Of a DNA stretch of 64,000 bases, positions 2,647 to 23,919 are shown in pieces. Each line of letters opens with the position of its first letter. Position 1 is the stretch's first letter. The stretch comes from Obrimoposthia wandeli (taxonomy: Eukaryota): the NCBI GenBank assembly GCA_977020255.1, contig CDROCS010000253.1, positions 4,278,001 to 4,342,000 of the forward strand, in the 5' to 3' direction. The notes beneath the pieces are model-generated. The model was not told the DNA's origin, ran no database searches, and saw nothing but the letters and a program-made list of their open reading frames with translations. The position numbers and the translations under genes are program-made.

Positions 2647-3450
2647 TTAATAAGTTAGCTGTTCAATAGCAACTGCGCAGGCTCTTAGTGCTGGTAAAAT
2701 AGTCGTTAATACTTGCTGTTTCGTTGTTTGCGAAATATGCGTACTGATACTTAACGCACCAAGAACTTTTCCGGCTTGATTTCGTACCGGTACCGAAATA
2801 GAGGTTAGACCTAGCTCTAATTCTTGTTCTACTAAAGAATAACCTTGCTGATTTACTTGCGCAATTTCTGCTGTTAACTCCACTTTGTTAGTGAGCGTGA
2901 AGGCAGTATATTGCTCCACTCGACAGCTTGTTAAAAAGTCATTTAATGCTTTACCTGTCATATCGGCCAACAGAACACGACCTAAAGATGTCGCAAAGGC
3001 AGGTAAGCGAGTACCCACATTCAAACTAACAGACATAATTCGTTTAGTGGTAGCAACACGTCCTACATAGACAACATCTTCACCTTCTAATACTGCTGCC
3101 GAGCATGACTCATTGAGTTGCTCAACTAACTGCTGCATTAAAGGTTTTGCGTTCTGCCAAACATCTTGAGAAGCGAGGTAAGCAAAGCCTAAATTAAGTA
3201 TTTTTACCGTTAACGAAAACTGCTTCCCCTCTTGTTTGGCATAACCTTCACTTACTAAAGTCAGTAAAAAACGCCTTGCTGCTGCTCGCGTATAACCTGT
3301 GGTAGTAGCAACTTCAGATAGTGTCATCGTCGGTCTGTGCTGATCAAAGGCCTGAATAACCATCAAACCCTTAAGTAAGGATTGTACGATTTCGGATGAT
3401 TTGATCATAACTTGATCATCATCATGTTTTCCTTGTTCTTGCTTTGACAT
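2647..3450 (-). CDS. pcaR: IclR-family regulator, PcaR/PobR type
   Basis: VQSLLKGLMVIQAF, TLSEVA..TGYTRAAARRFLLTL, RLPAFATSLGRVLLA; divergent from pcaIJ. Confidence 0.88.
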   Translation of the reverse strand: MSKQEQGKHDDDQVMIKSSEIVQSLLKGLMVIQAFDQHRPTMTLSEVATTTGYTRAAARRFLLTLVSEGYAKQEGKQFSLTVKILNLGFAYLASQDVWQNAKPLMQQLVEQLNESCSAAVLEGEDVVYVGRVATTKRIMSVSLNVGTRLPAFATSLGRVLLADMTGKALNDFLTSCRVEQYTAFTLTNKVELTAEIAQVNQQGYSLVEQELELGLTSISVPVRNQAGKVLGALSISTHISQTTKQQVLTTILPALRACAVAIEQLTY

Positions 3451-3561: not shown

Positions 3562-4347
3562 ATGATAGATAAAAGAGTGGCAAGTTGCGCCAGTGCAGTT
3601 ACCGATATAAAAGATGGCGATACCGTAATGATTGGTGGTTTTGGTGAAGCAGGCAGTCCGATAGAGTTAATTCACGCATTAATAGATCATGGAGCAAAAA
3701 ACTTAACCGTCATTAATAACAATACCGGTAGTGGTCGAGTAGGTTTAGCTGCCCTGATTGAAAATGGTCAAGTGGCTAAAATGATCTGCTCCTATCCGCG
3801 CACTGCTAATTCTCTCGTTTTTCCAGAACTGTATCGCAGTGGTAAAATTGAACTAGAGCTTGTTCCACAAGGTACGTTAGCCGAACGCATTCGGGCTGGT
3901 GGCGCTGGAATTCCTGCTTTTTTCACTAAAACGTCAGTCGGAACGCCGCTTGCAGAGGGCAAAGAACGCCGAAATTTTGAGGGCGATGACTATGTTATGG
4001 AACGTAGCCTAAAGGCTGATTTCGCTCTTATCAAAGCCAAGCAAGCTGACCGATACGGTAATTTAACCTATAACAAAACTGCCCGTAACTTTGCACCAAT
4101 TATGGCCATGGCGGCAACAAGAACCTTAGTGCAAGTCAATGAAATGGTTGAATTAGGGGATCTTGATCCCGAAAACGTCATTACCCCCGGCATATTCGTT
4201 AATGCGTTAATTGAGGTAACACAACCACAACAAGAGTCTCAACTGGTGAAAAACGGCATTACCTATCCAGAAGTAAAAGCACCTGCAACAAAGACCTCCA
4301 CAATAAATAGCCTAGAAAAAATAAACTCAGGAGCAACACAAGCATGA
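3562..4347 (+). CDS. pcaI: 3-oxoadipate CoA-transferase subunit A
   Basis: MIDKRV, DGDTVMIGGFGEAGSP, NNTGSG, LVPQGTLAERIRAGGAGIPAF; ATGA overlap with subunit B. Confidence 0.88.
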   Translation: MIDKRVASCASAVTDIKDGDTVMIGGFGEAGSPIELIHALIDHGAKNLTVINNNTGSGRVGLAALIENGQVAKMICSYPRTANSLVFPELYRSGKIELELVPQGTLAERIRAGGAGIPAFFTKTSVGTPLAEGKERRNFEGDDYVMERSLKADFALIKAKQADRYGNLTYNKTARNFAPIMAMAATRTLVQVNEMVELGDLDPENVITPGIFVNALIEVTQPQQESQLVKNGITYPEVKAPATKTSTINSLEKINSGATQA

Positions 4348-5087
4348 GCCAAGTAGCAAAAAAACAAAACCTCGAGGCAACAACTCAAATTGGCTGGAAC
4401 CGAGAGCAAATGGCACAACGCTGTGCACAAGATATTGAAGATGGCAGCTATGTAAACCTTGGCATAGGTATTCCTGAAAAAGTCGCTCAATATGTTCCTG
4501 AGGGTAGAGAGGTTATCTACCACACAGAAAATGGTTTACTTGGCATGGGTAATTCTCCCTCTGATGAAGAGCTTGATGCTGATTTAATCAATGCCGGTAA
4601 AAAAGCGGTAACGGCAATTCCTGGTGCCTCATATTTTCATCACGGTGACAGCTTTGCCATGATCCGCGGCAATCATATAGATGTTTGTGTACTCGGGGCA
4701 ATGCAAGTCTCAATGAAAGGAGATTTAGCCAATTGGTCGACCGGCGCTGTTGATGCGATTCCTGCCGTAGGTGGTGCTATGGACTTAGTGGCTGGCGTTA
4801 AAACCATCTACATTATTACCCAACATACCACTAAAACAGGGGCAGCTAAAATATTGCCTGAATGTACTTTCCCGCTCACCGGACAGAAGGTTGTTAATCG
4901 AATTTATAGTGATTTATGTGTGATTGATGTCACCGAAAACGGTTTAGTGCTTATGGAGCTAGCGCCCGGCATTAGCTTTGACTATGTACAAGAACGCACA
5001 GGGGTAGCACTGCTTAATGGACTCTCAACAAAAAGTAACATAGCAGATAATCATATCGTTAACACCACACATAAGGCGCAGCAGTAA
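4344..5087 (+). CDS. pcaJ: 3-oxoadipate CoA-transferase subunit B
   Basis: YVNLGIGIP, catalytic HTENG, GAMQVS, VGGAMDL. Confidence 0.88.
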   Translation: MSQVAKKQNLEATTQIGWNREQMAQRCAQDIEDGSYVNLGIGIPEKVAQYVPEGREVIYHTENGLLGMGNSPSDEELDADLINAGKKAVTAIPGASYFHHGDSFAMIRGNHIDVCVLGAMQVSMKGDLANWSTGAVDAIPAVGGAMDLVAGVKTIYIITQHTTKTGAAKILPECTFPLTGQKVVNRIYSDLCVIDVTENGLVLMELAPGISFDYVQERTGVALLNGLSTKSNIADNHIVNTTHKAQQ

Positions 5088-6397
5088 TGGTAAATAAAAG
5101 CGAAAAACTATTTAATAAAGCACTGAAGGTATTACCTGGCGGTGTTAGTCGTAATACTATTTTTAGAAAGCCCTATCCATTTTACGCTGATAAAGGTGAA
5201 GGCTGTTATGTTACCGATGTAGAAGGTATAACTCGCATCGACTTTGCTAACAACATGGCCTCATTGATTCATGGTCACGCCTACCCTGCAATTGTTGAAG
5301 CCGTATCAGCACAGCTAGCTAAAGGCAGTTGTTTTACCATGGCAACCGAAGCTGAAGTTAACTATGCTCAGCTGTTATGCGACCGAGTACCGAGCTTTGA
5401 TAAAATTAGATTTGTTAACTCGGGCACCGAAGCGGTAATGGCAATGTTAAAAGCATCGCGTGCCTATACAGGTAAAGCTAAAATAGCCAAAGTTGAAGGT
5501 GCTTACCATGGCGCTTACGATTATGCTGAAGTAAGCCAAACAGCAAACCCAAGTAACTGGGGAGAACTTGATAAGCCAAATAGCATCCCAGTAGCCGAAG
5601 GTACACCACCAAAAGCATTAGAAGATGTTGTGGTAATACCTTTTAATGATCCTGAACGAGCGATTAAGATTTTAGATCAACATAAAGATGAAATCGCCTG
5701 TATTTTAGTTGATTTATTACCTCATCGAGTTGGCTTAATTCCCGCCAGCAATGCTTTTATTAATGCGCTACACCAGTGGACCCGTGATAATAAATCACTG
5801 TTAGTATTCGATGAAGTTATTACCTTTAGAACTAATTACAGTGGTGCTCAACAAAACTATGATGTTACGCCAGACTTAACCGCGCTGGGAAAAGTTATTG
5901 GTGGTGGTTTCCCCGCAGGTGCCTTAGCAGGTTGTGATAAGGTGATGAAAGTACTCGACCCAACGGAGCCAAAAGTTTTATTACCTCACTCAGGCACTTT
6001 TTCGGCCAATCCAATTACTATGACAGCAGGTTTAGCCGCCATGAAAGACTTTGATCAAGCAGCAGTTATCAAGCTTAATCAGCTTGCCAGTTATGCTAGA
6101 AAAGCGATTACTCAGGCCATAGAGGAGGTAGGTATCAATGCTTGTGTAACAGGTGCCGGCAGTATGTTTAGAATACATCTAAAAGCACAGCCACCTAAAA
6201 ACTACCGTGAAAGCTATGTTGATAAAAAAGAAAGCCAATTAATCACTAAATTACTCGATCATTTATTCGATAATGGCATTATGATGATAAATACTTGCAC
6301 AGCAGCGTTATCAACCGCGATGAGTGAAAAAGAAATAGATCATTTAGTCTGTGCACTAAAAGATGGCTTTGAACTAATAAAGCCAGAAATGGCATAA
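5087..6397 (+). CDS. Class III PLP aminotransferase, GSA-aminomutase-like fold, probably a beta-amino-acid transaminase
   Basis: LPGGVSR, FVNSGTEA, GAYHG, FDEVITF, ALGKVIGGGFPAG (PLP Lys), HSGTFSANP; lacks HemL SPVRAF; TAATG overlap with pcaJ. Confidence 0.85.
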   Translation: MVNKSEKLFNKALKVLPGGVSRNTIFRKPYPFYADKGEGCYVTDVEGITRIDFANNMASLIHGHAYPAIVEAVSAQLAKGSCFTMATEAEVNYAQLLCDRVPSFDKIRFVNSGTEAVMAMLKASRAYTGKAKIAKVEGAYHGAYDYAEVSQTANPSNWGELDKPNSIPVAEGTPPKALEDVVVIPFNDPERAIKILDQHKDEIACILVDLLPHRVGLIPASNAFINALHQWTRDNKSLLVFDEVITFRTNYSGAQQNYDVTPDLTALGKVIGGGFPAGALAGCDKVMKVLDPTEPKVLLPHSGTFSANPITMTAGLAAMKDFDQAAVIKLNQLASYARKAITQAIEEVGINACVTGAGSMFRIHLKAQPPKNYRESYVDKKESQLITKLLDHLFDNGIMMINTCTAALSTAMSEKEIDHLVCALKDGFELIKPEMA

Positions 6398-6581: not shown

Positions 6582-7799
6582 ATGAGAGACGTATACATCT
6601 GTGATGGTATTCGCACGCCGATTGGAAAATATGCAGGCGCTTTATCATCTGTTCGCGCTGATGACTTAGCAGCAATTCCACTTAAAGCATTAAAAGACAG
6701 AAACCCAACATTAGATTTAACCCAAGTAGACGATGTTATTTTAGGCTGTGCCAACCAAGCAGGTGAAGACAATCGTAACGTCTCTCGTATGGCGCTTTTG
6801 TTAGCGGGTTACCCTACCCAAGTAGCAGGTTGTACCATTAATCGTTTATGTGGCTCAGGTATGAATGCCATTGCAATAGCGACAAATGCTATTAAAGCTG
6901 GCGAGGCTGAAATGTTAATTGCTGGCGGTGTTGAAAGCATGTCGCGCGCACCTATGGTAATGGCGAAAGCTGAAAGCGCTTTTTCACGTAACGCTGAATT
7001 ATTCGATACCACGTTAGGCTGGCGTTTTGTTAATCAAAAATTACATACCGCCTATGGCACAGATTCTATGCCTGAAACCGCAGAGAATGTTGCTGAGCAA
7101 TTTGGTATTAGCCGTGAAGCTCAAGATAAATTCGCTTTTGCTAGTCAAAGTAAAGCCAAAGCAGCACAAGATGATGGTCGATTTGCCGAAGAAATAGTCC
7201 CTGTGATTATCCCGCAGCGCCGTGGTGATGATATTGTTGTTGAAAAAGATGAACACTTACGTCTTAGCTCGTTAGAAAAGCTAGCAACTCTCAAAGCACC
7301 TTTTAGAGAGGGCGGCTCAGTCACCGCAGGTAATACCTCTGGCGTAAATGATGGCGCTGCAGCCGTTATTCTTGCCAGCAAAGAAGCGGCCTTAGCCAAT
7401 GGCTTAACGCCAAAAGCGAGAATACTTGGCTCTGCTGTTATTGGTGTTACCCCTGAAATTATGGGTATTGGCCCAGCGCCAGCGAGTGCCAAACTGCTAA
7501 AACGTTTAGGTCTGAGCATTGATGATATGGACATTATTGAGTTCAACGAAGCTTTTGCTGCACAGGCGCTTGCCAGTGCCCGTGAATTGGGTCTTGAAGA
7601 TGATGACGTACGTTTAAACCCACAAGGTGGTGCCATTGCTCTGGGTCATCCATTAGGCATGAGTGGCACACGTTTATTAATCACAGCAACGAAACAGCTT
7701 GAGCGCAGTGGTAAACGTTATGCACTCTGCGCTATGTGTGTTGGTGTTGGCCAAGGCATTGCTATGGTCATTGAGCGATATAGTGAGAATGTACAATAA
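6582..7799 (+). CDS. pcaF: 3-oxoadipyl-CoA thiolase
   Basis: GCANQAGEDNRNVSRM, NRLCGSG, GGVESMSRAP, NEAFA, GAIALGHPLG, MCVGVGQG. Confidence 0.92.
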   Translation: MRDVYICDGIRTPIGKYAGALSSVRADDLAAIPLKALKDRNPTLDLTQVDDVILGCANQAGEDNRNVSRMALLLAGYPTQVAGCTINRLCGSGMNAIAIATNAIKAGEAEMLIAGGVESMSRAPMVMAKAESAFSRNAELFDTTLGWRFVNQKLHTAYGTDSMPETAENVAEQFGISREAQDKFAFASQSKAKAAQDDGRFAEEIVPVIIPQRRGDDIVVEKDEHLRLSSLEKLATLKAPFREGGSVTAGNTSGVNDGAAAVILASKEAALANGLTPKARILGSAVIGVTPEIMGIGPAPASAKLLKRLGLSIDDMDIIEFNEAFAAQALASARELGLEDDDVRLNPQGGAIALGHPLGMSGTRLLITATKQLERSGKRYALCAMCVGVGQGIAMVIERYSENVQ

Positions 7800-12023: not shown

Positions 12024-12024
12024 A

Positions 12025-13002
12025 TCAGTACCTAACCCTTATTTGTATTCTAGCCAACTGCTGTTTTTCACCCTCTGATGGACTGTTAAGTTGCTTACCA
12101 CCTGACATACTTATCACTAACAGGGGATTAAATTGATAACTAAAACCAATATTTACTTGCGTATCTGCACTTGGCTGGTTTTCTCTATCTCTGATAATTA
12201 ACTGGCCATATAGCGTAAGCTGCTCATTTATTGAGGTTTTATTAAATTCAAGTAAGCTATATTTTTCTTTTTCCCTGCCTTGTGATTGCTTATTATCTTC
12301 ACCCAGCGCTAACTCACCTAAGAATCCCCATGTCCCCCAATAATATTGCCAATCTAAGGCTAACCTTTTTCGTGAAACATCATCAATTTTTCCCTCAAAA
12401 AATGATAAACCAACCACAAAATCTAAGTGGATCAATGAGCCTATTCGACCTGTAACAGCATAAGAGCCATCAACCGACCTAGCCTTGTCTTTACCACCCA
12501 AGGTATAACTCACACTGTATTCAACTTGGCTTAGCACTTTATTAAGGCCAAGACCCCAATCGAGCTTTGCTCCTAAGTTTTTCCCATGATAATAATCGAG
12601 TAAGCGACCGTTGGTATCAATACTCTCTTCTAAGCCAAAGGGTAAAGTAAAATGTCCTATTCGAATATTAGGGAGCCAATTGGGGCCAGCAGTATAGTTA
12701 AGATGAGCTTCTCGAATGATAAATTCACTATCATCTTTAGAGGTAAATAAAAAAGGTACCGGAAGGTGATTTGATAGCTTAGTATAATAAACCTGCCCTA
12801 CCCCATAACCTACATCGCCTGTCGATACAGTAAAAACCTTATGAGTGTCTAAGCCGAAGACATAAATACGACTGGTGTTATCTAATGCCCCATTGTGACT
12901 TAATCGAGCACTAGCATCTAAACTCCACCTGAGGCTTTGAGTAAAGTCGGCATAACAAGGCACAGAAAGAAGCGCTAAAAAACTGAAATACATATATCTC
13001 AT
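12025..13002 (-). CDS. Outer-membrane beta-barrel (porin-like) protein
   Basis: Signal peptide, IRIGHFTLPFGLEE (phosphate-porin-like), alternating beta strands, C-terminal IQIRVRY. Confidence 0.7.
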   Translation of the reverse strand: MRYMYFSFLALLSVPCYADFTQSLRWSLDASARLSHNGALDNTSRIYVFGLDTHKVFTVSTGDVGYGVGQVYYTKLSNHLPVPFLFTSKDDSEFIIREAHLNYTAGPNWLPNIRIGHFTLPFGLEESIDTNGRLLDYYHGKNLGAKLDWGLGLNKVLSQVEYSVSYTLGGKDKARSVDGSYAVTGRIGSLIHLDFVVGLSFFEGKIDDVSRKRLALDWQYYWGTWGFLGELALGEDNKQSQGREKEKYSLLEFNKTSINEQLTLYGQLIIRDRENQPSADTQVNIGFSYQFNPLLVISMSGGKQLNSPSEGEKQQLARIQIRVRY

Positions 13003-13082
13003 CGCTTCTCCTACCTTGGAAAAATTTAAAATTAAATGGCTAAATAGAGTCTTCTACTATTAATTTTATTTAATAAGCCCTA

Positions 13083-13107
13083 ATACCAATTGGTTGCAAT
13101 TGATATA
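13083..13107. repeat. Collapsed remnant of ATACCAATT-ended MITE family
   Basis: ATACCAATT-ggttgc-AATTGATAT; ends match the element at 48404-48646. Confidence 0.35.
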
Positions 13108-13352
13108 CCAAAATATAAAGAGCAACACAGTTCGCTCCTTAGCCCTTTATTTATCAACTTCATAGTAATAGTCAGTCTATTTAGGCAAGTTAAACAGTAG
13201 GTGGATATTTTCAAATTGAGACAGACTTGCAAAATGCAATGCAGAAAGAGAATAGATGGGCTGACAATAGTTAATTTGCTCTTAAGTAGACTGATGTCTA
13301 CTCGACTGGCAATAATTAATCATCAGCTATAACCAACAGATTAAACAGCAAT

Positions 13353-13378
13353 AAAAAAGCCAGCATTAAGCTGGCTTC
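13353..13378 (-). terminator. Intrinsic terminator downstream of yceI
   Basis: AAAAAAGCCAGC-attaa-GCTGGCTT, U-tract on minus strand. Confidence 0.75.
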
Positions 13379-13415
13379 AAGTGGTTTAGGCAAGGAGGGT
13401 AAAATAAATACTAAA

Positions 13416-14015
13416 CTACATTTTTACCCCTTCAATATTCAAAGTCATTTCAACCTGCGTTGACGCTGGGCCTAAATTGTAAGTAATACCATAATCAGCT
13501 AGCTTAAAGTTAGTGGTTCCAGAGAAACCAGCACGATGACCACCCCAAGGATCTTGTCCTTCACCAATTTTTACTACAGGAAACGAAATAATTTTAGTTA
13601 CACCTTTTAAGGTGAACTCGCCAGTAACAATTGCGTTTTCATCATCGCTAAACTTAATATTGTCACTGATAAAAGTTGCTTTAGGGAAGCTGCTAACATT
13701 TAAGAAGTCTTTACTTTTAAGGTGCTTATCACGCTCTGCATGATTCGAATCAATACTTTTAGTGTCAATTTCAATACTGATTTTTGCATTATTTGGTGAT
13801 TTATCATCATAAGAAAAATCGCCATCAAATGTATTAAAACGACCTAATAACCAGCTGTAGCCTAGATGCTTAATTTTAAATTGAACTGACGCATGTGCAC
13901 CTTTAACGTCTACTTTATAATCGGCGGCAAGTGCCGTGTTTGGTACCAATGCAGCAATGAGTGAACTCGCTAATAAGCTAGTGGCTAGTGTGGTGGTAAT
14001 TAATGTCTTTTTCAT
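13416..14015 (-). CDS. yceI: YceI-family periplasmic lipid/polyisoprenoid-binding protein
   Basis: YKVD..GAHASVQF..KHLGYSWLLGRFNTFDG, SNHAERDKHL, GQDPWGG. Confidence 0.92.
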   Translation of the reverse strand: MKKTLITTTLATSLLASSLIAALVPNTALAADYKVDVKGAHASVQFKIKHLGYSWLLGRFNTFDGDFSYDDKSPNNAKISIEIDTKSIDSNHAERDKHLKSKDFLNVSSFPKATFISDNIKFSDDENAIVTGEFTLKGVTKIISFPVVKIGEGQDPWGGHRAGFSGTTNFKLADYGITYNLGPASTQVEMTLNIEGVKM

Positions 14016-14101
14016 GTGAGATTCCTTGTCTATTCTCTAATTAAGAGGAATGAAGCGTTAATTAATAATAAATAAATTAACTGTTTTGATTCTTTGTTTA
14101 A

Positions 14102-14671
14102 CTACTTTCTAGGTAATACTCTTAGCATCCGAATTAAAGTATTATTTTTATTAAAAAAATGGTGTTTAAGTGCTGCAAGTGTATGGCCAGCACTGAGTAA
14201 AATTAAAGTCCATGCTAAAAACTCATGAATATTGCCGGCAATATCTTCTTGGTTAGCAAAATTAATTGGCAATGACGGCACTGATATTAAGCCAAAAACA
14301 TCTATAGCTCTACCATCTGCCGTTGAAATTAAGTAACCACTTATCATCAAAAAAACCATCAAACCATAAAGTACTAAGTGAGCATAATGTGCTGCTTTTA
14401 CTTCAATTTTTCTAGCAGATTTATCGGCACTTTTTGGCGTAACATTAACTACACGCCAGACGATTCTTAACATCAAAGCAACGAACAGGGTCATACCAAT
14501 ATTTTTATGTAAATCTAACGAGCCTTTATACCAAGCGTCGTAATAAGTTAGTTCAACCATATAGAGCCCTAAGCCGAATAAGGAAAATATACTTATCGCC
14601 ATTAGCCAATGAAATACTATAGTAATAAGCCCATAGCTGTTCTCTGTATTCTTTAACATGTTACTACTCAT
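14102..14671 (-). CDS. Cytochrome b561 (YceJ-like); likely start at 14659
   Basis: YGLITIVFHWL, LHKNIG, HYAHLVLY, HEFLAW, GHTLAALKHHF heme-ligand His pattern; upstream of yceI. Confidence 0.9.
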   Translation of the reverse strand: MSSNMLKNTENSYGLITIVFHWLMAISIFSLFGLGLYMVELTYYDAWYKGSLDLHKNIGMTLFVALMLRIVWRVVNVTPKSADKSARKIEVKAAHYAHLVLYGLMVFLMISGYLISTADGRAIDVFGLISVPSLPINFANQEDIAGNIHEFLAWTLILLSAGHTLAALKHHFFNKNNTLIRMLRVLPRK

Positions 14672-14848
14672 CTTATTATCTCTTTCTTTTGAGTCAGCGT
14701 ATTTGTTAATGCACTAACAACATCCTTATCAAATTTCTAAGGCTACTATAGCGAATTTAAATCTATTAAAAAATAGTAATAAATGCGAAACTATTGTGCA
14801 AATACGCACAACTAATTGCATTTTTATATAATCTAAATAGTAGGATAG

Positions 14849-15727
14849 ATGATGAAAGATATTTCTTGGGATGATTATAAAATAGCCTACCAAGTTGCTA
14901 TTGATGGTAGCTTAAGCCAAGCAGGTATATCTCTCAGCATAAATCACACCACCGTATTAAGGCGCATAAACCAATTAGAGCAAGCACTTGAAGTAAAGCT
15001 ATTTATTCGTCACCAGCGTGGTTATAAACTTACCGATGCGGGCTGTGTATTAATGGATGAAATGCCAGAAATGCTGGCAAAGTTTTCTAGCTTAGAAAAT
15101 AAACTACAAAATGTTGAGGGGGATATTAGTGGTGAATTTAGAATAACTACTGTTAGTTCGTTTTCACCTGTTATAACACCAACATTAAAAGCGTTTAGAG
15201 CGAAGTATCCAAAAATTCGCCTCAAGCTTATTTCTACTGATGATATTGTACCGCTTGACTCAGGTGCTGCGCATGTATCCTTACGAGCAGGGCCAAGTCC
15301 TGTTGGCGTTGATCTTGTCGTTAAAAATCTAACCCGATTAACAACTGCTTATTATGCAACACAAGGTTATATCGATGAATTTGGTCAGCCCAACAGTATC
15401 AGTGAATTTAACGAACACCAATGGGTATTACCTACCCCGGAAAAGTATCGTATTCCTTTTGTTAATTACATTGTTGATAAAATAGATAAAAATAAAATAG
15501 TTTTTCAAAGCAACCACTTCCCTGATATTACTGAAGCGGTTATTGCAGGTATGGGCATTGGCCCTTTAGCTGAATACCAAGCAGATTTAAATCCATCAAT
15601 GATTAAGATTGATTTAGACATCCCGAAAAATAATGAGTCTATCTGGTTTGTTTATCATAAAGATTTAAAACATAGTGCTCGTATCCAATGTTTTTATCAA
15701 TTTTTAAAAGCAGCACTGTTAGATTAA
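14849..15727 (+). CDS. LysR-family regulator
   Basis: SWDDYK..GSLSQA..INHTTVLRRINQLE..KLFIRHQRGYKLTDAG. Confidence 0.92.
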   Translation: MMKDISWDDYKIAYQVAIDGSLSQAGISLSINHTTVLRRINQLEQALEVKLFIRHQRGYKLTDAGCVLMDEMPEMLAKFSSLENKLQNVEGDISGEFRITTVSSFSPVITPTLKAFRAKYPKIRLKLISTDDIVPLDSGAAHVSLRAGPSPVGVDLVVKNLTRLTTAYYATQGYIDEFGQPNSISEFNEHQWVLPTPEKYRIPFVNYIVDKIDKNKIVFQSNHFPDITEAVIAGMGIGPLAEYQADLNPSMIKIDLDIPKNNESIWFVYHKDLKHSARIQCFYQFLKAALLD

Positions 15728-15993
15728 ACGGTAATTCAGTGTTCCCTTTTAAATCAGCTAACGTGATGAGGAGCAACCATTTCGAAAGAGTAGCTTTTTC
15801 ATTAATCATTCTTTATATTAATAAAAAGTTAAAAAAATGTTTACTGCTGATTAAGTTTTTGATGCTAAAGTCAATCCATAACAATGACTTTGATATAACG
15901 GCTACAGGCAACGCATGTTTAAATTAGGTGACATTTATATAGCTAACTTGACCTTTTCGTTGCCATACACTAAGGATTATTGGTGAGTTTTTT

Positions 15994-18114
15994 ATGTTTA
16001 AACTCAATATAAAAACGCGTATTTTAACGTTTGTCGTACTTTTTCAGATTATTGCTTACTGTACCATTCAGTTATTCAATAACTTCAACTACAAAAAGGA
16101 GTTAACTCGATTAAAAAATAATGAAATTCAGCAAACATTTATAGCTACCACTGAAAAAATAAATAATTTAATCCTATTACTCGAAAGAAATGTCACCAAT
16201 TTAGCTATTTCCTCAGAACACCTTTACTCGCTAAGGCAAGAAAAACAGCTTACCGTTGAGCAATTAACCGTTGCAATGAAGCGATTACTGACCGAAAATT
16301 TCACCTCGTCCCCTGAAGCCATTGGCGGTGGTATATGGTTTGAACCTTATCTTATTGATCCGTCAATGAAATATTTTGGGCCTTATTCTTTTCAAGGTAA
16401 AAATGGGGTCGAGTTTAGCTGGCAGCTAAATACTGATATATATGATTATCATAACCAAGATTGGTATACCATGGCTTCAGCGAGTAACTGGGGCCAAGGA
16501 AATAAAAGCACTAGAGCTCTATTTTGGACACCTCCGTATATTGATACTGCCGGTACCTATTCATTAATGATGACAGTAGATGCTGTGATGTTTGATCAAC
16601 AAAAAATAATGATCGGCATGACTACCTTAGACTGGTCTTTAACTGAGCTAACCTCATTATTATCAAAGGTTCGAATATCTGAAAATTCTTATCCTTTTTT
16701 TATTCACAAAGCATCAAAGCAGTTCCTCAGTTACCCCAAAGACCCTACATTAGTAATGCAACAAGCCAATCAGTTCAATTGGGGCAAACAAGTACTCAGT
16801 AACAATAAGATAAACGAGTTAACTACCCTCAATAACATCTTCATTGATGGCATTAACTACAATGTCTACTTTCATGGTACTGATGGTGGTTTTATTTTTG
16901 GCTCTTTAAGCCCGGTTTCTGATTTAGAAAAAGACATAAATAGCATTGCCAACATAACCTTACTTGTTGGAACAAGTATTTGCCTATTCTTTATTGTGCT
17001 ACTGATTGTTTTGATGCATATACTGTTTTCCCCCTTTGATAAGGTGCTTTCCTTAATTAAAAACTCAATTACTCATCGTTCTGACAACAAAAAATTTGTT
17101 GAAATTCAGCCTATAACATACTCAGAAGATAACGAGTTTACCCCTATAGTGCATGCACTTGATGAGGTATATAAGCAGGTAAGTAGTTATATTGAACAAA
17201 TAACGGTAAACAATGCGCATCTGGTACAGTCAACAGCAGAAATTGATACTTTAAATAACAAACTTGAAGAAAAAGTACTTTTAAGAACCCAGCAGCTCGA
17301 AGCAAAAACACAGCAAGCGCTAGACTCACTGACCCAATTAAAAAACACCCAGCAACAACTGATTGAGCAAGAAAAACATGCTGCATTAGGACGTTTAGTG
17401 GCCGGCGTTGCGCATGAAATAAATACGCCTTTGGGTATCAGTATCACTGCTGCTTCTTTCATGAAAGATATAAGCGAAGAGATTTTTCATCAAATTGAAA
17501 ATGGTATACTTAAAAAATCTGAATTTACTAAAAAACATCAACAACTTGTAGAAAGTGCGAAGCTATTGGAAAATAATCTTAAACGAACCTCTGATTTGGT
17601 GACGAGTTTTAAACAAGTTGCCGTTGATCAATCATCAGAAGAGTTTAAACAGTTTAATTTATTTGATTATATAACCAAAGTTTCCCGATCATTACAGCCA
17701 AGAATAGAGCAGGCAAAGCATAAACTCGTCATAAATTGCCCCGACACTGATATTGAAGTGTATTCAATTCCTGGTGTTATTATTCAAGTGATCACCAATT
17801 TAGTCGAAAACTCACTTATTCATGCCTTTACCAATGCTGACTCAGGTTTAATCACAATTCACTTGTTGAAGCATGAAAAACATATAGATCTAATTATTTC
17901 GGATAATGGCAATGGCATGCCCATTCAGGTAGTTGACTCTATTTTTGATCCCTTTTTCACCACATCAAGACGTAATGGAGCAACAGGGTTAGGCATGCAC
18001 ATTGTTTATAACCTCATCACGCAACAACTTCTTGGTATGGTGAGCTGTAAAAGCGACCTAGGTGAAGGAACAAAAATCACAATGTCCTTGCCTACTCAAA
18101 GCAAGTTAGAGTGA
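15994..18114 (+). CDS. dCache-domain sensor histidine kinase
   Basis: TM, Cache-like GGGIWFEPY/YHNQDWY/PYID, TM, LGRLVAGVAHEINTPLG, NLVENSLIHAF, DNGNG, PFFTT, GLGM. Confidence 0.88.
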   Translation: MFKLNIKTRILTFVVLFQIIAYCTIQLFNNFNYKKELTRLKNNEIQQTFIATTEKINNLILLLERNVTNLAISSEHLYSLRQEKQLTVEQLTVAMKRLLTENFTSSPEAIGGGIWFEPYLIDPSMKYFGPYSFQGKNGVEFSWQLNTDIYDYHNQDWYTMASASNWGQGNKSTRALFWTPPYIDTAGTYSLMMTVDAVMFDQQKIMIGMTTLDWSLTELTSLLSKVRISENSYPFFIHKASKQFLSYPKDPTLVMQQANQFNWGKQVLSNNKINELTTLNNIFIDGINYNVYFHGTDGGFIFGSLSPVSDLEKDINSIANITLLVGTSICLFFIVLLIVLMHILFSPFDKVLSLIKNSITHRSDNKKFVEIQPITYSEDNEFTPIVHALDEVYKQVSSYIEQITVNNAHLVQSTAEIDTLNNKLEEKVLLRTQQLEAKTQQALDSLTQLKNTQQQLIEQEKHAALGRLVAGVAHEINTPLGISITAASFMKDISEEIFHQIENGILKKSEFTKKHQQLVESAKLLENNLKRTSDLVTSFKQVAVDQSSEEFKQFNLFDYITKVSRSLQPRIEQAKHKLVINCPDTDIEVYSIPGVIIQVITNLVENSLIHAFTNADSGLITIHLLKHEKHIDLIISDNGNGMPIQVVDSIFDPFFTTSRRNGATGLGMHIVYNLITQQLLGMVSCKSDLGEGTKITMSLPTQSKLE

Positions 18115-18136
18115 CACAGATTATTATTTTGTTCCT

Positions 18137-19333
18137 TTAAATTGCTGCCATTTTTTTACTTGTATTAACAAACTGGCTTGCCGCTAAAGAGAGTAACGCG
18201 ATAAATGCACCCGCATAAAACACCAACGAATGATCATATAACCAAATTAGGCCAAAGGTCGCTGGAATAACAACGGCGGCAATATGATTAATACTAAAAC
18301 TGACTCCTGCACTTGAAGCAATATCTTTTGGATCCGCTATTTTTTGAAAATAAGTTTTCAACGCAATGGCCATAGCAAAAAACAAATGGTCAATCACATA
18401 AAGCACCGCAGCTGCATTGGCCGATTCAACTAATGCATAACCAACAAAAATAGTAATTAAACCTAGATACTCTAAAGTCAGCGCTTTACGCTCGCCAACT
18501 TTAGCAATCCAAAGGCCTATTTTAGGCGCTAAAAAGAAGTTAATTACATGATTAATCATATACAGCACTGTGATTTGTTGAACACTGTAACCAAACTTTT
18601 CTACCATCAAAAAACCAGCGAAAACAACAAATATCTGTCGACGAGCTCCCGCTAAAAAGGTCAACAAGTAATACAAACTATAACGTTTTCTTAATATGAT
18701 TTTTTTGTGTTGTGCATGTTCCATAGGGAATTTAGGCATAGCAAACGCCAACCATAGCGTTAGTAGTAAACCACTTAAACCAAAAAACAAATACATCACT
18801 TGGTAGCTGGCAGAAAAAATACTAAAGCCCAACCAAATTAGGGCATAACAAGTTAATGAAGCGGCAGACTTTATTGACATTAATTGACCAAGCTTTGCTG
18901 CTGCTTCATCTTTTTTGAACCACTGTAGGCTTAATGAGGTATTTAAGGTTTCGTAATAATGAAAGCCGATAGACATTAACACCGTTGTTGCATACAGCCC
19001 GTAAATACTAGGGAACAACCCTGTAATCGCCACACCAATGGATAACAAACACAAAGAAATTAAAGCAAATACTTGTTCGGTAAATACCAACAACACAAAA
19101 ATTGCAGTGAATGCTAAGAAGCCAGGAATTTCTCTTAAAGACTGCAATATGCCTATTTCAGCACCAGTAAAAGCAGCTTGCTCAATAACAAAATTATTGA
19201 GCATAGCCATCCAACCGGCAAAGGTAATTGACGTAACCATGCTGGCAATAGCTAAGAAAAAAAAAGGACTATGCCATTTATTATTTTGTGCGGTTAAAAG
19301 TGTCGACGCATTTTCCGTACTTACTTTATCCAT
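18137..19333 (-). CDS. MFS transporter
   Basis: 12 hydrophobic segments, LQSLREIPGFLAF, ARRQIFVVFAGF. Confidence 0.85.
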   Translation of the reverse strand: MDKVSTENASTLLTAQNNKWHSPFFFLAIASMVTSITFAGWMAMLNNFVIEQAAFTGAEIGILQSLREIPGFLAFTAIFVLLVFTEQVFALISLCLLSIGVAITGLFPSIYGLYATTVLMSIGFHYYETLNTSLSLQWFKKDEAAAKLGQLMSIKSAASLTCYALIWLGFSIFSASYQVMYLFFGLSGLLLTLWLAFAMPKFPMEHAQHKKIILRKRYSLYYLLTFLAGARRQIFVVFAGFLMVEKFGYSVQQITVLYMINHVINFFLAPKIGLWIAKVGERKALTLEYLGLITIFVGYALVESANAAAVLYVIDHLFFAMAIALKTYFQKIADPKDIASSAGVSFSINHIAAVVIPATFGLIWLYDHSLVFYAGAFIALLSLAASQFVNTSKKMAAI

Positions 19334-19499
19334 ACTGATCCCTGCTCTAAATACTAATACTGTGTTACTGGCAATTGGTTTTAAATTAGGTACTAAGTGC
19401 CAAAGAAATAATAGCTCTCCAAGTTATCTTCTGAAGATCAGCTTGTGTCGCTAGAGTGGTCATTATATGATGATTTTAACATGACCAATAGCAACAATT

Positions 19500-20306
19500 A
19501 TGACAGTTAGTTTATCAATTCAGACAAAATCTACTTGGGATCAACAACCCCCTAGTCGACACTATGATGTTCTACCTCGGTCTGTAGTGCCGTTGTCTAA
19601 AGAATTTAAAGCGATGACACAAATAACTAATCACAAACATACTTGGTCACAGCTGGCCTATTCTTGTTCAGGAATCATGCATATTGAAACTGACTCAGGC
19701 ATTTTTGTTATTCCTCCTGAACAGGCGCTGTGGATTCCTCCAAACGTAAAACATCAACATTTTTGTAAAAATAAGGTCAGTTACCGTAGCCTACATATAG
19801 ATGCCAAGTTAAGTGAAATATTAGGTAATAAAGTACGACCATTGTCAGTTGATCCCTTATTGAAGTCACTGATATTAGAAATATCAAATTGGCCTACAGA
19901 TTACCCTGAAACGGACCAGACACAGCGTTTTATTCTAGTGTTATTAGACCGCTTAGCGATAGCAAAAAGCAACGAACTTTTTATGCCTACAATTCAAGAT
20001 AAACGACTATTACCTATCATTGAAACTCTTAATCAAGAGCCCGCGAATAAATTAACAGTAGAACAATGGGCACTTAAAGTAGGTGCATCAAGTCGCACCT
20101 TAAATAGATTATTTAATCAAAATTACGGTATGGGCTTTAGCCGATGGAAACAGAAACTGAGAATATTAAAGTCATTAGAATTACTTAATAGCAACTCGCG
20201 AATTGTAGATATTGCCTTTGAGTTAGGTTATGAATCAACGTCGGCATTTATTACCGCTTTTAAAAAACACTTAGGTTGCTCACCTAAAAAATACCTTGCT
20301 AAGTAG
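19500..20306 (+). CDS. AraC-family regulator (cupin + double HTH)
   Basis: HKHTWSQL, PPEQALWIPPNVKH, SSRTLNRLF, FELGYESTSAFITAFKK. Confidence 0.92.
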   Translation: MTVSLSIQTKSTWDQQPPSRHYDVLPRSVVPLSKEFKAMTQITNHKHTWSQLAYSCSGIMHIETDSGIFVIPPEQALWIPPNVKHQHFCKNKVSYRSLHIDAKLSEILGNKVRPLSVDPLLKSLILEISNWPTDYPETDQTQRFILVLLDRLAIAKSNELFMPTIQDKRLLPIIETLNQEPANKLTVEQWALKVGASSRTLNRLFNQNYGMGFSRWKQKLRILKSLELLNSNSRIVDIAFELGYESTSAFITAFKKHLGCSPKKYLAK

Positions 20307-20425: not shown

Positions 20426-22147
20426 CTACTGCGTTAATCTATTCGTTAACGCTGCCGCTAAATCATGCTCAATAGTGGCAAGTTCATCTTCAAAGAAGAA
20501 CTTATCGGTATCAAACGGTTTAAGTAATTTCACATCGTTGGTGGTTTCATCGTATTTAGCTAAAAACACTTTGTCCATCCACTTCATGTTGCGCCCTTCG
20601 GTGAACATCAAAGCAAAGGCTCGTTCTCCGCCAACATCACATTCTCCCATAATCGAGATTTTACCCGCAGAAGTGGTCATAGACAGATGACGAGATGGGC
20701 GGTTAATCGATGGTAATTCACGGTATATTTTATCAAATATTTGACTAACGACACTAAGCGGCGCAGTGAAATAATGATGTTCACCGGTTGGTCTTGCGCA
20801 ATACATAGAATGAAAACTGATTAACATAGTCCCTAAAATATTAGCTAAATCTATCCAATTTTGTGCGCTGCGATCTATATCGATTGAGCCATCTTTATGC
20901 TCAAATAAACTGATATGATTCATCATCGGACTTTGACTACGAATAACCACACCGTGACGTTGCAAGCGACGAATAGCGGCAATAGTGGTTGGGTTTAATA
21001 ATTCTCGCGGTGTAGAGAAATGCGCCATCCATGCCAGTTGAATACCATTTTCATGCATTTTATCAAATACGGCTAACATCTTGTCGTACTTACGACTTAA
21101 AATCATTTCCGGTTGGAAGGTTAACGCACGTGTAGCAAGGCGAACCGTTTTAATGTGTAATAACTCTCGGTCTTCCATTAACGGCGTAATATATTGCTCA
21201 AAGCGACTCGCGGGCATGTAACCACCATCGCCACCGGTAATAAGCATATCAGTGACTTCTTTATGTACCTTTAAGTAACGATGAATTTGATCTATTTCTT
21301 TTTGGATAAACATATCTTCATCACCACGAACTTGCGCATGACGGAAACAATAAGTACAAAATGAAAAACAGTTTTGGGTAGTTTTATCAAAAATTAACTG
21401 ACACTGAGGGTATTTATGCTGACTACCATCAAGAAACTCGATTTCACCCTGCTCGTTTTCAAACCAAGGTTTATTAAGTTGTTGGTTTCCATCGTGAGGA
21501 CTGGTTTTTTCTTGGTAATCAGTAACAATGATTTTCTTCTCTTGTAAGTTAGCGACTAAGTATTCAGCCACGGTAACTTTGTTAATCATATTAGGTTGTG
21601 GCATCACTAACTGAAAAACAGAATCTTCATAAAAGTTAGTCCAGTCAATGCTATTTAAACTGTGCTTAGTCGCTAAAAATCGGTAAACCTCAATAAAGAG
21701 TTCCCGCTCTTCAATATCACCAATATCAATATTATTAGCTTCAAGTATTTCTACCACGTGGCGAAAGCCTGAAAGCCCAGTGTATTGATCTTTCTCATCG
21801 AACATATGGGCTGCTTTATCTAGTAAGCCCGAATGCTGTGGGTAAGACGCATGTAAGCGGCTGAGTAAACCCGGTGACAGTAGCTTTTCATCTTTAATCG
21901 TTTTACGAACGTCATCACTGTAGTGATATACATCCATCATATCGTTAATATCAATTTCGCTGACATCACTAATACCGTTTTTTAGACCATGGATATTACC
22001 AGTTAGTACTGAGCTATAAGACTGACAAGCACTTGAGTCAAGCTCTTTTGTATTAGTTTTATTTGGATCAACTATAGCGACATCAATATACTTTACTTTA
22101 GTTGTTGAATTTTTACTCGCTGAAACTTTATATGCGGAGTTGGTCAT
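20426..22147 (-). CDS. KamA-family radical-SAM/PLP amino-acid 2,3-aminomutase
   Basis: QHKYP, CFSFCTYCFR (CxxxCxxC plus Arg), LITGGD, AHFSTPREL, RSQSPMM, SAGKI (PLP Lys). Confidence 0.85.
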   Translation of the reverse strand: MTNSAYKVSASKNSTTKVKYIDVAIVDPNKTNTKELDSSACQSYSSVLTGNIHGLKNGISDVSEIDINDMMDVYHYSDDVRKTIKDEKLLSPGLLSRLHASYPQHSGLLDKAAHMFDEKDQYTGLSGFRHVVEILEANNIDIGDIEERELFIEVYRFLATKHSLNSIDWTNFYEDSVFQLVMPQPNMINKVTVAEYLVANLQEKKIIVTDYQEKTSPHDGNQQLNKPWFENEQGEIEFLDGSQHKYPQCQLIFDKTTQNCFSFCTYCFRHAQVRGDEDMFIQKEIDQIHRYLKVHKEVTDMLITGGDGGYMPASRFEQYITPLMEDRELLHIKTVRLATRALTFQPEMILSRKYDKMLAVFDKMHENGIQLAWMAHFSTPRELLNPTTIAAIRRLQRHGVVIRSQSPMMNHISLFEHKDGSIDIDRSAQNWIDLANILGTMLISFHSMYCARPTGEHHYFTAPLSVVSQIFDKIYRELPSINRPSRHLSMTTSAGKISIMGECDVGGERAFALMFTEGRNMKWMDKVFLAKYDETTNDVKLLKPFDTDKFFFEDELATIEHDLAAALTNRLTQ

Positions 22148-22488
22148 TACAAGGTTCTCTAAAGTAAACTCAAATTTTATGAGCTCACATTATTATTTTA
22201 AAATAGTGGTTAATAGTTGAAATAGGTATTTTATGAAGGGATTTTCAAAGAAAGCGCTACGTGAATCAAACGAGTAAAAATCACCAAGTCATGAGCTTTG
22301 GTAACAACCTTAAGAAAAGAAGATTATTACTAACCTTGTTTGATTTTAAGTAAGAAAGTGAAATGTCCCCTTGGTTATACTGGCAAGCACGTTACTTAAT
22401 AGCTCCACGATATTTATCGCTCTCTTATTGTAGCGTTGAGAGTTACTGGCAAAAGCAATCAATCATAGAGCCTATAAGCTAAAGAATA

Positions 22489-23469
22489 ATGAATTATCTA
22501 CCTAAAGAAAGACCTCAATCTAAAAAGTTATTACCCAGTACCAGTATGTTGGCCGCCTTTGATGCTGCTGCCAGAACAGGCAGTTTTACTGCTGCAGCAA
22601 AAGAACTGGCGTTAACTCAAGGGGCTATTAGTCGACAAGTAAATGCGCTAGAACAACAGCTAAACGTTAATTTATTTCATCGTAATAAACAGAATATATC
22701 GCTTACCGAAGCCGGAAGAAACTACGCTAAAGAAGTAAACTTGGCATTAAGTCATATTCGTTCAGCAACGCTTAACCTCATGACAAATCCCGATGGTGGC
22801 ATACTTAACCTTTCTATATTGCCCATGTTTGGCTCCCGCTGGTTAATGCCAAGGTTGGCTGACTTTTTAGCTCAACATCCAAAGATCACCATTAATACGG
22901 TTAGTAAGTTGTCACAATTTGACTTTTCTCATGAGGATATTCATTGCGCCATTCATTTTGGTAACGCTGATTGGTCACAAGCCAATTGTACTTTTTTAAT
23001 GGCTGAGGAAAGTGTTCCGGTATGTTCCCCTAAGCTGTTCAAACAAGCGGAGTTGGCAAAAACTGATAATGTTTGTGCAAGTTTAATCCATTTACCATTA
23101 TTACATATCGCCACCAGGCCTAATGCTTGGCAGTTGTGGTTTGATGATCACAACGTCATTTCAAAAACTAAATCAAAAACAAAAACAAAGTCAGAGCCGA
23201 AGTCAAAAGCACTGCAAGACATGCATTTTGAACAATTTTCCATAGCAACTAATGCTGCTGTCGCCGGTCTTGGCGTAGCATTATTACCACGCTTTTTGAT
23301 TGAAAATGAATTACAACGAGGCGAATTACAGATAATTTGTAACAAGCCCCAACGTACCGATAACGGCTATTACTTAGTAACGCCCAATGACAAACTTAGC
23401 TACGCCCCTATATTAGCTTTTACTCGCTGGCTAACCCAAGTGATCGCGAGTGAAAAGCTTCCTGTTTAG
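22489..23469 (+). CDS. LysR-family regulator, GcvA-like
   Basis: LPSTSMLAAFDAAARTGSFTAAAKELALTQGAISRQV, PMFGSRWLMPRL; divergent from the aminomutase. Confidence 0.9.
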   Translation: MNYLPKERPQSKKLLPSTSMLAAFDAAARTGSFTAAAKELALTQGAISRQVNALEQQLNVNLFHRNKQNISLTEAGRNYAKEVNLALSHIRSATLNLMTNPDGGILNLSILPMFGSRWLMPRLADFLAQHPKITINTVSKLSQFDFSHEDIHCAIHFGNADWSQANCTFLMAEESVPVCSPKLFKQAELAKTDNVCASLIHLPLLHIATRPNAWQLWFDDHNVISKTKSKTKTKSEPKSKALQDMHFEQFSIATNAAVAGLGVALLPRFLIENELQRGELQIICNKPQRTDNGYYLVTPNDKLSYAPILAFTRWLTQVIASEKLPV

Positions 23470-23517: not shown

Positions 23518-23919
23518 CTAGGAATAACTTGCCGGGCGACTATCTTCCATCAGTATATCTAATTTTATTTGTGCTTTTTTTGGATTAGCTAAGTCTATTA
23601 CTTCAATCATTTCACATTCATCTCTAATCATTTCAGGAATAAGACTAGGGTAATGACGACAGTCTTCAGGTCTGTCTAAGTAAATGCTGCAGGTATACAT
23701 ATCTGGGGCTAGTGAGTCTTTCTTGGGAGCAACATCGAGAAAAGGACAACGTTTTAACCTTGAACCTGATTCAGGATCGAACCATATCTCGTTGTTTATA
23801 ACGAATTTGAATATTTCTGGATTAAATATTTCCCATAGGTCAATTTCTTCTTTTGTCGCCGAAAGATCACCTCCTCCATATTTAATACAACATTTTCCGC
23901 ATTGATTACAATCTTTCAT
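23518..23919 (-). CDS. YkgJ-family cysteine-cluster protein
   Basis: CNQCGKCC, CPFL, CSIY..RP..CR.YP. Confidence 0.85.
   Translation of the reverse strand: MKDCNQCGKCCIKYGGGDLSATKEEIDLWEIFNPEIFKFVINNEIWFDPESGSRLKRCPFLDVAPKKDSLAPDMYTCSIYLDRPEDCRHYPSLIPEMIRDECEMIEVIDLANPKKAQIKLDILMEDSRPASYS

Follow-up and report, generated by a model that had tools for sequence, protein, structure and literature searches.

A probable L-2-aminoadipate 2,3-aminomutase with the lysine 2,3-aminomutase fold, linked to a conserved, predicted 3-oxoadipate gene module

The subject of this analysis is kamX, a gene on the minus strand of a 64,000-nucleotide stretch of contig CDROCS010000253.1 (assembly GCA_977020255.1), the whole of which is referred to as the window. 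kamX probably encodes an L-2-aminoadipate 2,3-aminomutase, a radical S-adenosylmethionine (SAM) and pyridoxal 5'-phosphate (PLP) enzyme that would open a route via 3-aminoadipate and 3-oxoadipate to succinyl-coenzyme A (succinyl-CoA) and acetyl-CoA. Conversion of 2-aminoadipate to 3-aminoadipate is proposed on the basis of gene context, which is the strongest evidence for the substrate; we infer substrate and products alike, as well as the use of cofactors, the effectors and the direction in which the route runs. An earlier reading of the letters alone (the sequence-only reading) had placed the open reading frame at 20426-22147 on the minus strand and had argued for a dicarboxylic substrate, 2-aminoadipate or glutamate, in place of lysine. 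The frame is confirmed at 573 aa, and the substrate proposal is supported and narrowed to 2-aminoadipate by the operon, its PcaF thiolase, the PcaR regulator and lysine-pathway genes. The gene, its four partners and their regulator are listed below; LAM stands for lysine 2,3-aminomutase and L001 for one of the Motiliproteus/Halopseudomonas loci.

20426..22147, minus strand: kamX, LAM-fold radical SAM / PLP aminomutase, proposed L-2-aminoadipate 2,3-aminomutase (573-aa open reading frame, fold match to 2a5h, homologue family)
3562..4347, plus strand: 3-oxoacid CoA-transferase subunit A, PcaI/ScoA family (75% identical to the L001 partner)
4344..5087, plus strand: 3-oxoacid CoA-transferase subunit B, PcaJ/ScoB family (74% identical to the L001 partner)
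5087..6397, plus strand: class-III aminotransferase of beta-amino-acid type, proposed 3-aminoadipate transaminase (nearest 6k8h)
6582..7799, plus strand: 3-oxoadipyl-CoA thiolase, PcaF type (TIGR02430, 669 bits)
2647..3450, minus strand: IclR-type regulator of the PcaR/PcaU/PobR family, divergent from the four partner genes (TIGR02431, 302 bits vs 284.75)

The gene order kamX, ctA, ctB, AT3, thl was recovered complete by tblastn in about 60 of 80 loci, and the first three loci inspected (Motiliproteus, Gallaecimonas and Sumerlaeaceae) each carry kamX, two CoA_trans genes, a class-III aminotransferase and a thiolase. Loci lacking the complete operon are mostly cut by contig ends or belong to the split Colwellia/Litorilituus type. 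The window is of this split type: the plus strand carries the four partner genes at 3562-7799, and 12.6 kb separate them from kamX, which is convergent with them; L006 and L007 show the same split. Carriers include Gammaproteobacteria, Bacteroidota, Cloacimonadota, Sumerlaeota, Fibrobacterota, Desulfuromonadales, SAR324 and Burkholderiales, at least seven phyla in all. Besides the operon genes only regulators are widely kept, namely two LysR clusters (about 42 loci) and an HTH_3-cupin protein (10 Bacteroidota loci).

The partner enzymes point to six-carbon dicarboxylic chemistry. The thiolase passes the TIGR02430 equivalog cut-off of 597 in the window and again, with 702 bits, in L001; it scores about 530 bits against the beta-ketoadipyl-CoA thiolases 6pca-6pcd and about 300-330 bits against acetoacetyl-CoA thiolases. 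The L001 transferase subunits reach 347 bits (subunit A, TIGR02429) and 302 bits (subunit B, TIGR02428), both above cut-off, and the best solved structures for subunit A are SCOT subunit A. Thiolase and PcaR-type regulator from the window and transferase subunits from L001 thus all lie above their cut-offs, which supports the prediction that the partner genes form a 3-oxoadipate module of PcaIJ/PcaF type. The aminotransferase falls under the HemL cut-off (342 bits vs 527); its best solved relative is 6k8h (402 bits), and beta-phenylalanine transaminases were also matched. The enzyme 6k8h is a Sphaerobacter thermophilus omega-transaminase acting on beta- and gamma-amino acids (PMC10589169). With 3-oxoadipate as the predicted intermediate, 2-aminoadipate is the favoured substrate because no other alpha-amino acid would give 3-oxoadipate by transamination of its 2,3-shifted isomer.

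Lysine is converted to 2-aminoadipate by the saccharopine pathway together with aminoadipate-semialdehyde dehydrogenase, and genes for this conversion lie near the kamX operon at ten loci in six lineages. By our own estimate, chance adjacency within a few kilobases would be of the order of 0.5% per locus for genes usually present about once per genome. Four Cloacimonadota-type loci carry a saccharopine dehydrogenase (PF03435 + PF16653) and an LKR-like AlaDh_PNT gene directly upstream of kamX on the same strand, with an amino-acid permease and a second saccharopine-dehydrogenase-like gene after the thiolase. An ALDH7-type dehydrogenase occurs in six loci of five lineages: in L059 (Gammaproteobacteria), L081 (Bacteroidota), L053 (Ramlibacter) and L037 (Desulfuromonadales) it adjoins the operon on the downstream side or just upstream, and in L034 (Motiliproteus) and L015 (SAR324) it lies inside the surrounding locus. 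In L081 the ALDH7-type gene is followed by a saccharopine dehydrogenase. The best solved relatives of this dehydrogenase are 6dbb (706 bits), Pcd (621 bits) and human ALDH7A1, the alpha-aminoadipic semialdehyde dehydrogenase (503 bits). An ALDH7-type gene was not found in two Cloacimonadota genomes with such lysine islands, and carriers without lysine-to-2-aminoadipate genes may import 2-aminoadipate.

The Cloacimonadota locus L052 (14795-19186) also shows what lies past the thiolase: an AA_permease-SLC12 fusion (742 aa), a saccharopine-dehydrogenase-like gene (375 aa) and an EamA transporter. Together with the two upstream genes, these look like a complete island for lysine uptake and catabolism.

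kamX belongs to a large, highly conserved family whose members, found by word search, are about 535 aa long. Members from Colwellia and Litorilituus are 84-92% identical, falling to 57-76% for homologues from Shewanella, Photobacterium, Pseudoalteromonas, Motiliproteus and Gallaecimonas, as well as from SAR324, Desulfuromonadales, Sumerlaeota, Fibrobacterota, Cloacimonadota and many Bacteroidota. An alignment of 32 family sequences from several phyla (A1) has a mean column identity of 66%. Distribution is patchy, with an orthologue in 2 of 301 sampled genomes of Colwellia's GTDB order. Most homologues bear no database name, or an automatic 'lysine 2,3-aminomutase'.

Family models place kamX nearest to the KamA family, yet it misses every curated cut-off by far. 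It scores 71.1 bits against TIGR00238 (KamA family radical SAM; cut-off 199.2), 57.5 bits against TIGR03820 (lysine 2,3-aminomutase; 525.4), 59 bits against the arginine aminomutase NCBIfam model (600), 53 bits against TIGR04368 (glutamate 2,3-aminomutase; 650) and 43 bits against TIGR03821 (EpmB; 369), and Pfam Radical_SAM gives 21.9 bits, under its gathering score of 29.5. Canonical KamA-family members of the same assembly score 350-431 bits against TIGR00238, a true LAM from that assembly scores 622 bits, and a canonical EpmB lies on kamX's own contig (C253:1794929-1795882, 501 bits, TIGR03821). Sequence search finds a single solved relative, the Clostridium subterminale LAM 2a5h (E = 8e-10, LAM residues 106-265), at about 16-20% identity.

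The structural evidence extends this relationship over the whole enzyme. An AlphaFold2 model of kamX built from A1 has a mean predicted local distance difference test score (pLDDT) of 80.4 and a predicted template modelling score of 0.82, and its top Foldseek match is 2a5h (E = 7e-14, 444 columns). VIA-align superposes model residues 109-523 on LAM 3-391 (Z 27.9, root-mean-square deviation 2.9 A, 318 residues), followed by generic radical SAM enzymes with Z of at most 11.1. Because the match covers LAM 3-391 and all others score far lower, kamX is, on this model, a full-length enzyme with the three-dimensional fold of LAM. The structural alignment begins at kamX residue 109 (LAM residue 3) and a global hhalign alignment at kamX residue 146, so the N-terminal extension measures 106-145 aa, a range that includes the roughly 120 aa of the sequence-only reading. 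By structure, the extra N-terminus of about 106 residues consists of 57 disordered and about 50 structured residues, and kamX also has a C-terminal helix. The disordered part is the following:

21977..22147, minus strand: disordered lineage-specific N-terminal tail, codons 1-57 (pLDDT 26-45)

Even Colwellia and Litorilituus differ in the length and sequence of this tail and have no more than short patches of it in common, and in A1 it is absent or different outside these genera.

Active-site residues were compared with LAM, in which Asp293 and Asp330 reportedly bind the lysine epsilon-ammonium group, Arg134 the alpha-carboxylate and Lys337 PLP. Searches of the PDB with the single kamX sequence and with the family profile reach LAM residues 106-265 only and are silent on Asp293 and Asp330; profile-profile and bridged multiple alignments were therefore used. 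The family was aligned by hhalign, locally and globally, to a reference profile of one true LAM and six EpmB from the same assembly (probability 98.7-99.4), and a MAFFT L-INS-i alignment joined LAM, EpmB and kamX with the sister family kamY, described below, as a bridge. LAM residue numbers were taken from the 2a5h sequence, in which D330 and K337 lie within VVDAPGGGGK. The sites concerned are these:

21341..21370, minus strand: CxxxCxxC cluster motif C260/C264/C267 and R269, codons 260-269 (invariant in 32 sequences)
20792..20797, minus strand: Ala451-Arg452, position of LAM Asp293, codons 451-452 (R452 by MAFFT, A451 by hhalign)
20660..20683, minus strand: S489 (LAM Asp330 position) to K496, codons 489-496 (hhalign and MAFFT)

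The catalytic core is retained. Both methods equate LAM C125/C129/C132 with kamX C260/C264/C267, LAM R134 with R269 and the PLP lysine K337 with K496, which presumably binds PLP in kamX; G495-K496 is invariant in the 32 homologues. The cluster motif, the arginine following it and the GK lysine, all called intact from the letters, hold up in these alignments. A1 is invariant at C260, C264, C267, R269, the GGD motif, R452, R483, R486 and K496, and the HxYP motif is invariant in the family. The substrate-binding residues differ. LAM Asp330 corresponds to Ser489 in both alignments, with Ser or Thr across the family, as the non-acidic residue noted earlier at this position had implied. For Asp293, MAFFT with the kamY bridge gives Arg452 in an ungapped alignment (PYYxxxx[D/R]...HF), and EpmB keeps the Asp293 equivalent there; hhalign gives Ala451, with C450 = C292 and G455 = G297, through a compensating gap pair, so that Arg452 adjoins. 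The ungapped placement is slightly more parsimonious because the four families are equal in length between the anchors. Neither Asp is restored by alignment of LAM, EpmB, kamX and kamY, so the loss of Asp293 seen by the sequence-only reading stands under both methods, and its exact placement of the arginine stands under MAFFT, hhalign giving Ala451. By alignment, then, kamX keeps neither lysine-binding Asp, and its invariant Arg452 occupies the Asp293 site or the position next to it.

Further differences lie outside this pocket. LAM C268 and the C-terminal CxCxxC, reported as the zinc-site cysteines in the LAM structure paper, are not kept in kamX: C268 corresponds to R426, and there is no conserved C-terminal Cys. 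After the position of LAM R263, kamX carries an insertion of 12 invariant residues (NHISLF...). Substitutions at the Asp330 equivalent, D331G in Bacillus subtilis and D339H in Porphyromonas gingivalis, are key for alanine 2,3-aminomutase activity of lysine 2,3-aminomutases (PMC9850924).

These residues and scores bear on three other readings of kamX. Automatic annotation makes it an ordinary lysine 2,3-aminomutase; some databases call its homologues 'L-lysine 2,3-aminomutase' and LAM is the closest solved structure, but the TIGR03820 score set beside that of the true LAM, the loss of both epsilon-ammonium-binding residues, the absence of beta-lysine-processing genes nearby and the presence of a canonical EpmB on the same contig render it extremely improbable. 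An analogue of glutamate 2,3-aminomutase, passing beta-glutamate through 3-oxoglutarate and its CoA ester to malonyl-CoA and acetyl-CoA, would likewise have both Asp replaced, and beta-glutamate is a marine and archaeal osmolyte. That enzyme, however, reportedly has Lys and Asn for the two Asp, whereas kamX has Arg (or Ala) and Ser; its TIGR04368 score lies far below the cut-off; and the context is one of C6 compounds (PcaF, PcaR, aminoadipate-semialdehyde dehydrogenase and saccharopine dehydrogenase). Since we also know of no precedent for 3-oxoglutaryl-CoA thiolysis, the glutamate reading is very unlikely. In five carrier genomes, no glutamate or arginine 2,3-aminomutase scored above cut-off. 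Finally, a LAM fold might perform other radical chemistry than an amino-group shift, on a pathway intermediate or another substrate. Scores far under all KamA-family cut-offs, about 106-145 extra N-terminal residues, the 12-residue insertion and the lost zinc-site cysteines speak for such a departure; the invariant PLP lysine, alpha-carboxylate Arg and HxYP motif speak against it, as does an operon that needs an alpha-to-beta amino shift to join an alpha-amino acid to a beta-transaminase and beta-keto-acid route, and we consider it quite unlikely.

A small maximum-likelihood tree places kamX and kamY in one supported clade (99/98), and a long branch parts them from LAM, EpmB and other KamA-like proteins, subject to the usual long-branch caveats. 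kamX thus appears by sequence to be a separate deep clade, a sister lineage to the curated KamA family. The label 'KamA-clade' given to it earlier was too strong, since kamX and kamY branch apart from LAM, EpmB and the other KamA-like proteins and TIGR00238 gives kamX 71 bits against 199. kamY proteins are about 450 aa long, 30-37% identical to kamX and score 141-145 bits against TIGR00238, under its cut-off; they occur in 4 of 301 genomes of Colwellia's order, at the following loci:

kamY: L092:8119-9474; L093:8015-9574; L094; L095:8733-10067

kamY shares the equivalents of R452, R483, R486, S489 and K496 with kamX but lacks the N-terminal part and the 12-residue insertion of kamX, and its loci have no pca-like neighbours. 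In L095, a B12-binding radical SAM gene and a gene of GltB type (glutamate synthase domain) lie divergently beside kamY. An in-frame TAG was flagged in three kamY matches: in two it is the natural stop, and in L093 only it is a Trp-to-stop change about 45 codons before the end.

Several observations weigh against 2-aminoadipate as the substrate. The equivalents of R452, R483, R486 and S489 are common to kamY, whose gene context differs; these residues therefore mark the kamX and kamY clade and are no specific sign of 2-aminoadipate. MAFFT matches Arg452 to Asp293, and hhalign sets it one residue off. The original residue argument consequently stands in its loss of both Asp and is weaker than thought in its appeal to the arginine. 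At the level of genes, an ALDH7-type gene (E <= 1e-60) is present in one of five gammaproteobacterial carriers and was not found in Colwellia psychrerythraea ND2E, which is closely related to the genome of the window, or in the Shewanella, Photobacterium and Pseudoalteromonas carriers; two of five carriers examined, Colwellia and Shewanella, have no clear saccharopine dehydrogenase; and none of the best candidates scored as ALDH7-type lies on the window's contig. Membership of the PcaI/J-ScoA/B transferase family fits acetoacetate as well as 3-oxoadipate. Oxygen sensitivity is usual among radical SAM enzymes, yet Colwellia is largely aerobic.

Some of these points favour a 2,3-aminomutase for another acidic or neutral amino acid, such as 2-aminopimelate (giving 3-oxopimelate) or 2-aminobutyrate (giving acetoacetate), with the operon serving as a general CoA-transferase/thiolase route for beta-keto acids. 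The transferase family spans acetoacetate and 3-oxoadipate, PcaF/PaaJ-type thiolases take more than one dicarboxylyl-CoA, and several carriers are without recognisable 2-aminoadipate-making genes. Set against this are the thiolase, above its 3-oxoadipyl-CoA equivalog cut-off and about 200 bits over acetoacetyl-CoA thiolases, the PcaR-type regulator, and the aminoadipate-semialdehyde dehydrogenase or saccharopine-pathway genes that adjoin the operon in six lineages. Such a substrate is accordingly unlikely.

For 2-aminoadipate, the proposed catalysis follows that of LAM by analogy. The [4Fe-4S] cluster on C260/C264/C267 would cleave SAM reductively, and the resulting 5'-deoxyadenosyl radical would abstract hydrogen at C3 of the substrate, which would be bound as an aldimine to the PLP freed from K496. 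Migration of the amino group through an azacyclopropylcarbinyl radical would then yield 3-aminoadipate. R269 would grip the alpha-carboxylate, and the distal carboxylate would occupy the site of LAM's lysine epsilon-ammonium group, near Arg452 (or Ala451 beside Arg452) and Ser489. 2-Aminoadipate is isosteric with lysine, its distal carboxylate oxygens standing at the chain position of N-zeta with opposite charge, and this opposite charge is consistent with a site that has an Arg and neither Asp.

The downstream steps would be carried out by the four partners. The beta-type transaminase (5087-6397) would convert 3-aminoadipate to 3-oxoadipate, the PcaI/J-like transferase (3562-5087) would form 3-oxoadipyl-CoA with succinyl-CoA as donor, and the PcaF-type thiolase (6582-7799) would release succinyl-CoA and acetyl-CoA, the succinyl-CoA being recycled. 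The net conversion would be 2-aminoadipate, an amino acceptor and CoA to succinate, acetyl-CoA and an amino acid, with no O2 and no net redox change. A redox-neutral, O2-independent route fits the presence of the operon in Cloacimonadota, Bacteroidales and Desulfuromonadales.

Comparison with known systems defines what is shared and what is new. kamX resembles LAM (KamA/AblA, 2a5h) in its fold, CxxxCxxC motif, Arg134 equivalent, GGD SAM motif, HxYP motif and PLP lysine, and by this analogy presumably shares its radical PLP mechanism. It is unlike LAM in the replaced Asp293 and Asp330, the missing zinc-site cysteines, the longer N-terminus, the 12-residue insertion and the C-terminal helix, and its context is one of catabolic PcaIJF-like genes, not beta-lysine genes. 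The glutamate 2,3-aminomutase Eam (TIGR04368) is likewise said to be a KamA-type enzyme with both lysine-binding Asp replaced for a dicarboxylic amino acid; unlike kamX, Eam is close to LAM, its replacing residues differ, and the proposed substrate of kamX is one carbon longer. With the lower branch of the beta-ketoadipate pathway (PcaR, PcaIJ, PcaF), the kamX module shares the thiolase, transferase and regulator families and the recycling of succinyl-CoA. It differs in that 3-oxoadipate would arise from an amino acid via aminomutase and transaminase, not from aromatic ring cleavage, and no pcaBCDGH genes were seen in kamX loci.

The known fate of 2-aminoadipate is transamination to 2-oxoadipate, followed by glutaryl-CoA or the HglS route to 2-hydroxyglutarate. 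Like the kamX route, these routes start from 2-aminoadipate after saccharopine, pipecolate or aminoadipate-semialdehyde steps; unlike it, they reportedly need oxidative decarboxylation or O2 (HglS), whereas the kamX route would be redox-neutral and O2-independent, ending in succinate and acetyl-CoA. Full-text literature searches for 3-aminoadipate and its synonyms returned only unrelated papers, and searches joining aminoadipate, radical SAM, aminomutase, 3-oxoadipate, thiolase and CoA-transferase returned nothing relevant on this route. The nearest published case is a variant of lysine fermentation in Cloacimonas with an acyl-CoA beta-transaminase, a different pathway (PMC3149608). The evidence supports kamX as an enzyme of known type with a new specificity, in a new clade, at the head of a pathway for which these searches gave no description.

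Disposal of 2-aminoadipate by bacteria, anaerobes above all, is an old gap in lysine catabolism. On balance, we favour the wider view that kamX is the first natural 2-aminoadipate 2,3-aminomutase (a new EC 5.4.3 activity), founding a new branch of radical SAM / PLP aminomutases and an O2-independent, redox-neutral branch of lysine catabolism into the lower beta-ketoadipate pathway, with the five-gene module horizontally spread over at least seven bacterial phyla including strict anaerobes. If so, a new enzyme activity would be joined by 3-aminoadipate as a new metabolite of central catabolism, and amino-acid catabolism would gain an unexpected bridge to the aromatic beta-ketoadipate pathway. 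Annotations would need correction, from 'lysine 2,3-aminomutase' or 'hypothetical' for kamX and from 'HemL' for the transaminase. Biotechnology would also gain natural enzymes for 3-aminoadipate and 3-oxoadipate, two C6 compounds that serve as precursors of adipic acid and beta-amino acids, and kamY would be one more aminomutase still to be discovered, acting on a different acidic substrate.

Regulation of the split operon is suggested by two divergent regulators, the PcaR-type protein beside the partner genes and a LysR protein beside kamX. The latter and the other features next to kamX are listed here:

22489..23469, plus strand: LysR-family regulator, GcvA-like, divergent from kamX (HTH_1 and LysR_substrate)
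22280..22305, minus strand: dyad GTTACCAAAG-N7-CTTGGTGAT, candidate LysR operator, about 135-160 nt upstream of the kamX start
18137-19333, minus strand, and 19500-20306, plus strand: MFS transporter and AraC regulator beside kamX (Pfam MFS_1 and HTH_18)

The LysR protein scores 257 bits against NF008352, under the cut-off of 288, and a divergent LysR is present in about 42 loci. The dyad, GTTACCAAAG-N7-CTTGGTGAT, lies in the kamX-LysR intergenic region, is kept in 11 of 11 Colwellia and Litorilituus loci and occurs once in the window, where 0 matches are expected by chance. The sequence-only reading had assigned kamX its own divergent GcvA-like regulator, and these findings agree. From this arrangement, the LysR protein (22489-23469) probably controls kamX and the PcaR-like protein (2647-3450) the other four genes. 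A scan for promoters and terminators gave nothing above chance.

Other neighbours are of more local interest. The stretch between the operon halves (7948-20306) holds unrelated genes, which encode a NudC-like NAD diphosphatase, histidine kinases, YceI, cytochrome b561, a further LysR protein, and the MFS and AraC proteins. The MFS and AraC pair is kept beside kamX in 7 Colwellia-group loci only, and weak evidence makes it a possible uptake system. A CxxCxxCC protein (PF03692, putative Zn/Fe-chelating; 23518-23919, minus strand) adjoins the LysR gene and is kept there in six Colwellia-group loci; a role as electron donor or helper of the kamX enzyme would be pure speculation. Two genes upstream of the PcaR-like regulator lies a sodium-dependent (NSS/SNF-type) transporter gene (27-1058), possibly an amino-acid importer.

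The assembly itself (1.35 Gb, 6912 contigs) holds many different bacteria and is a metagenome or holobiont assembly; the window sits on a Colwellia-like contig of at least 4.34 Mb. The whole assembly contains 16 KamA-family matches and at least 15 ALDH7-type genes, on different contigs. Among the other carriers, the Motiliproteus/Halopseudomonas loci (L001, L019, L023-L026) are flanked by a BCCT transporter, a 4HBT thioesterase and an extra Aminotran_1_2 gene after the thiolase, with a DHO_dh/ferredoxin, EthD and cupin cluster upstream, and these flanking genes look like lineage-specific additions to the pathway.

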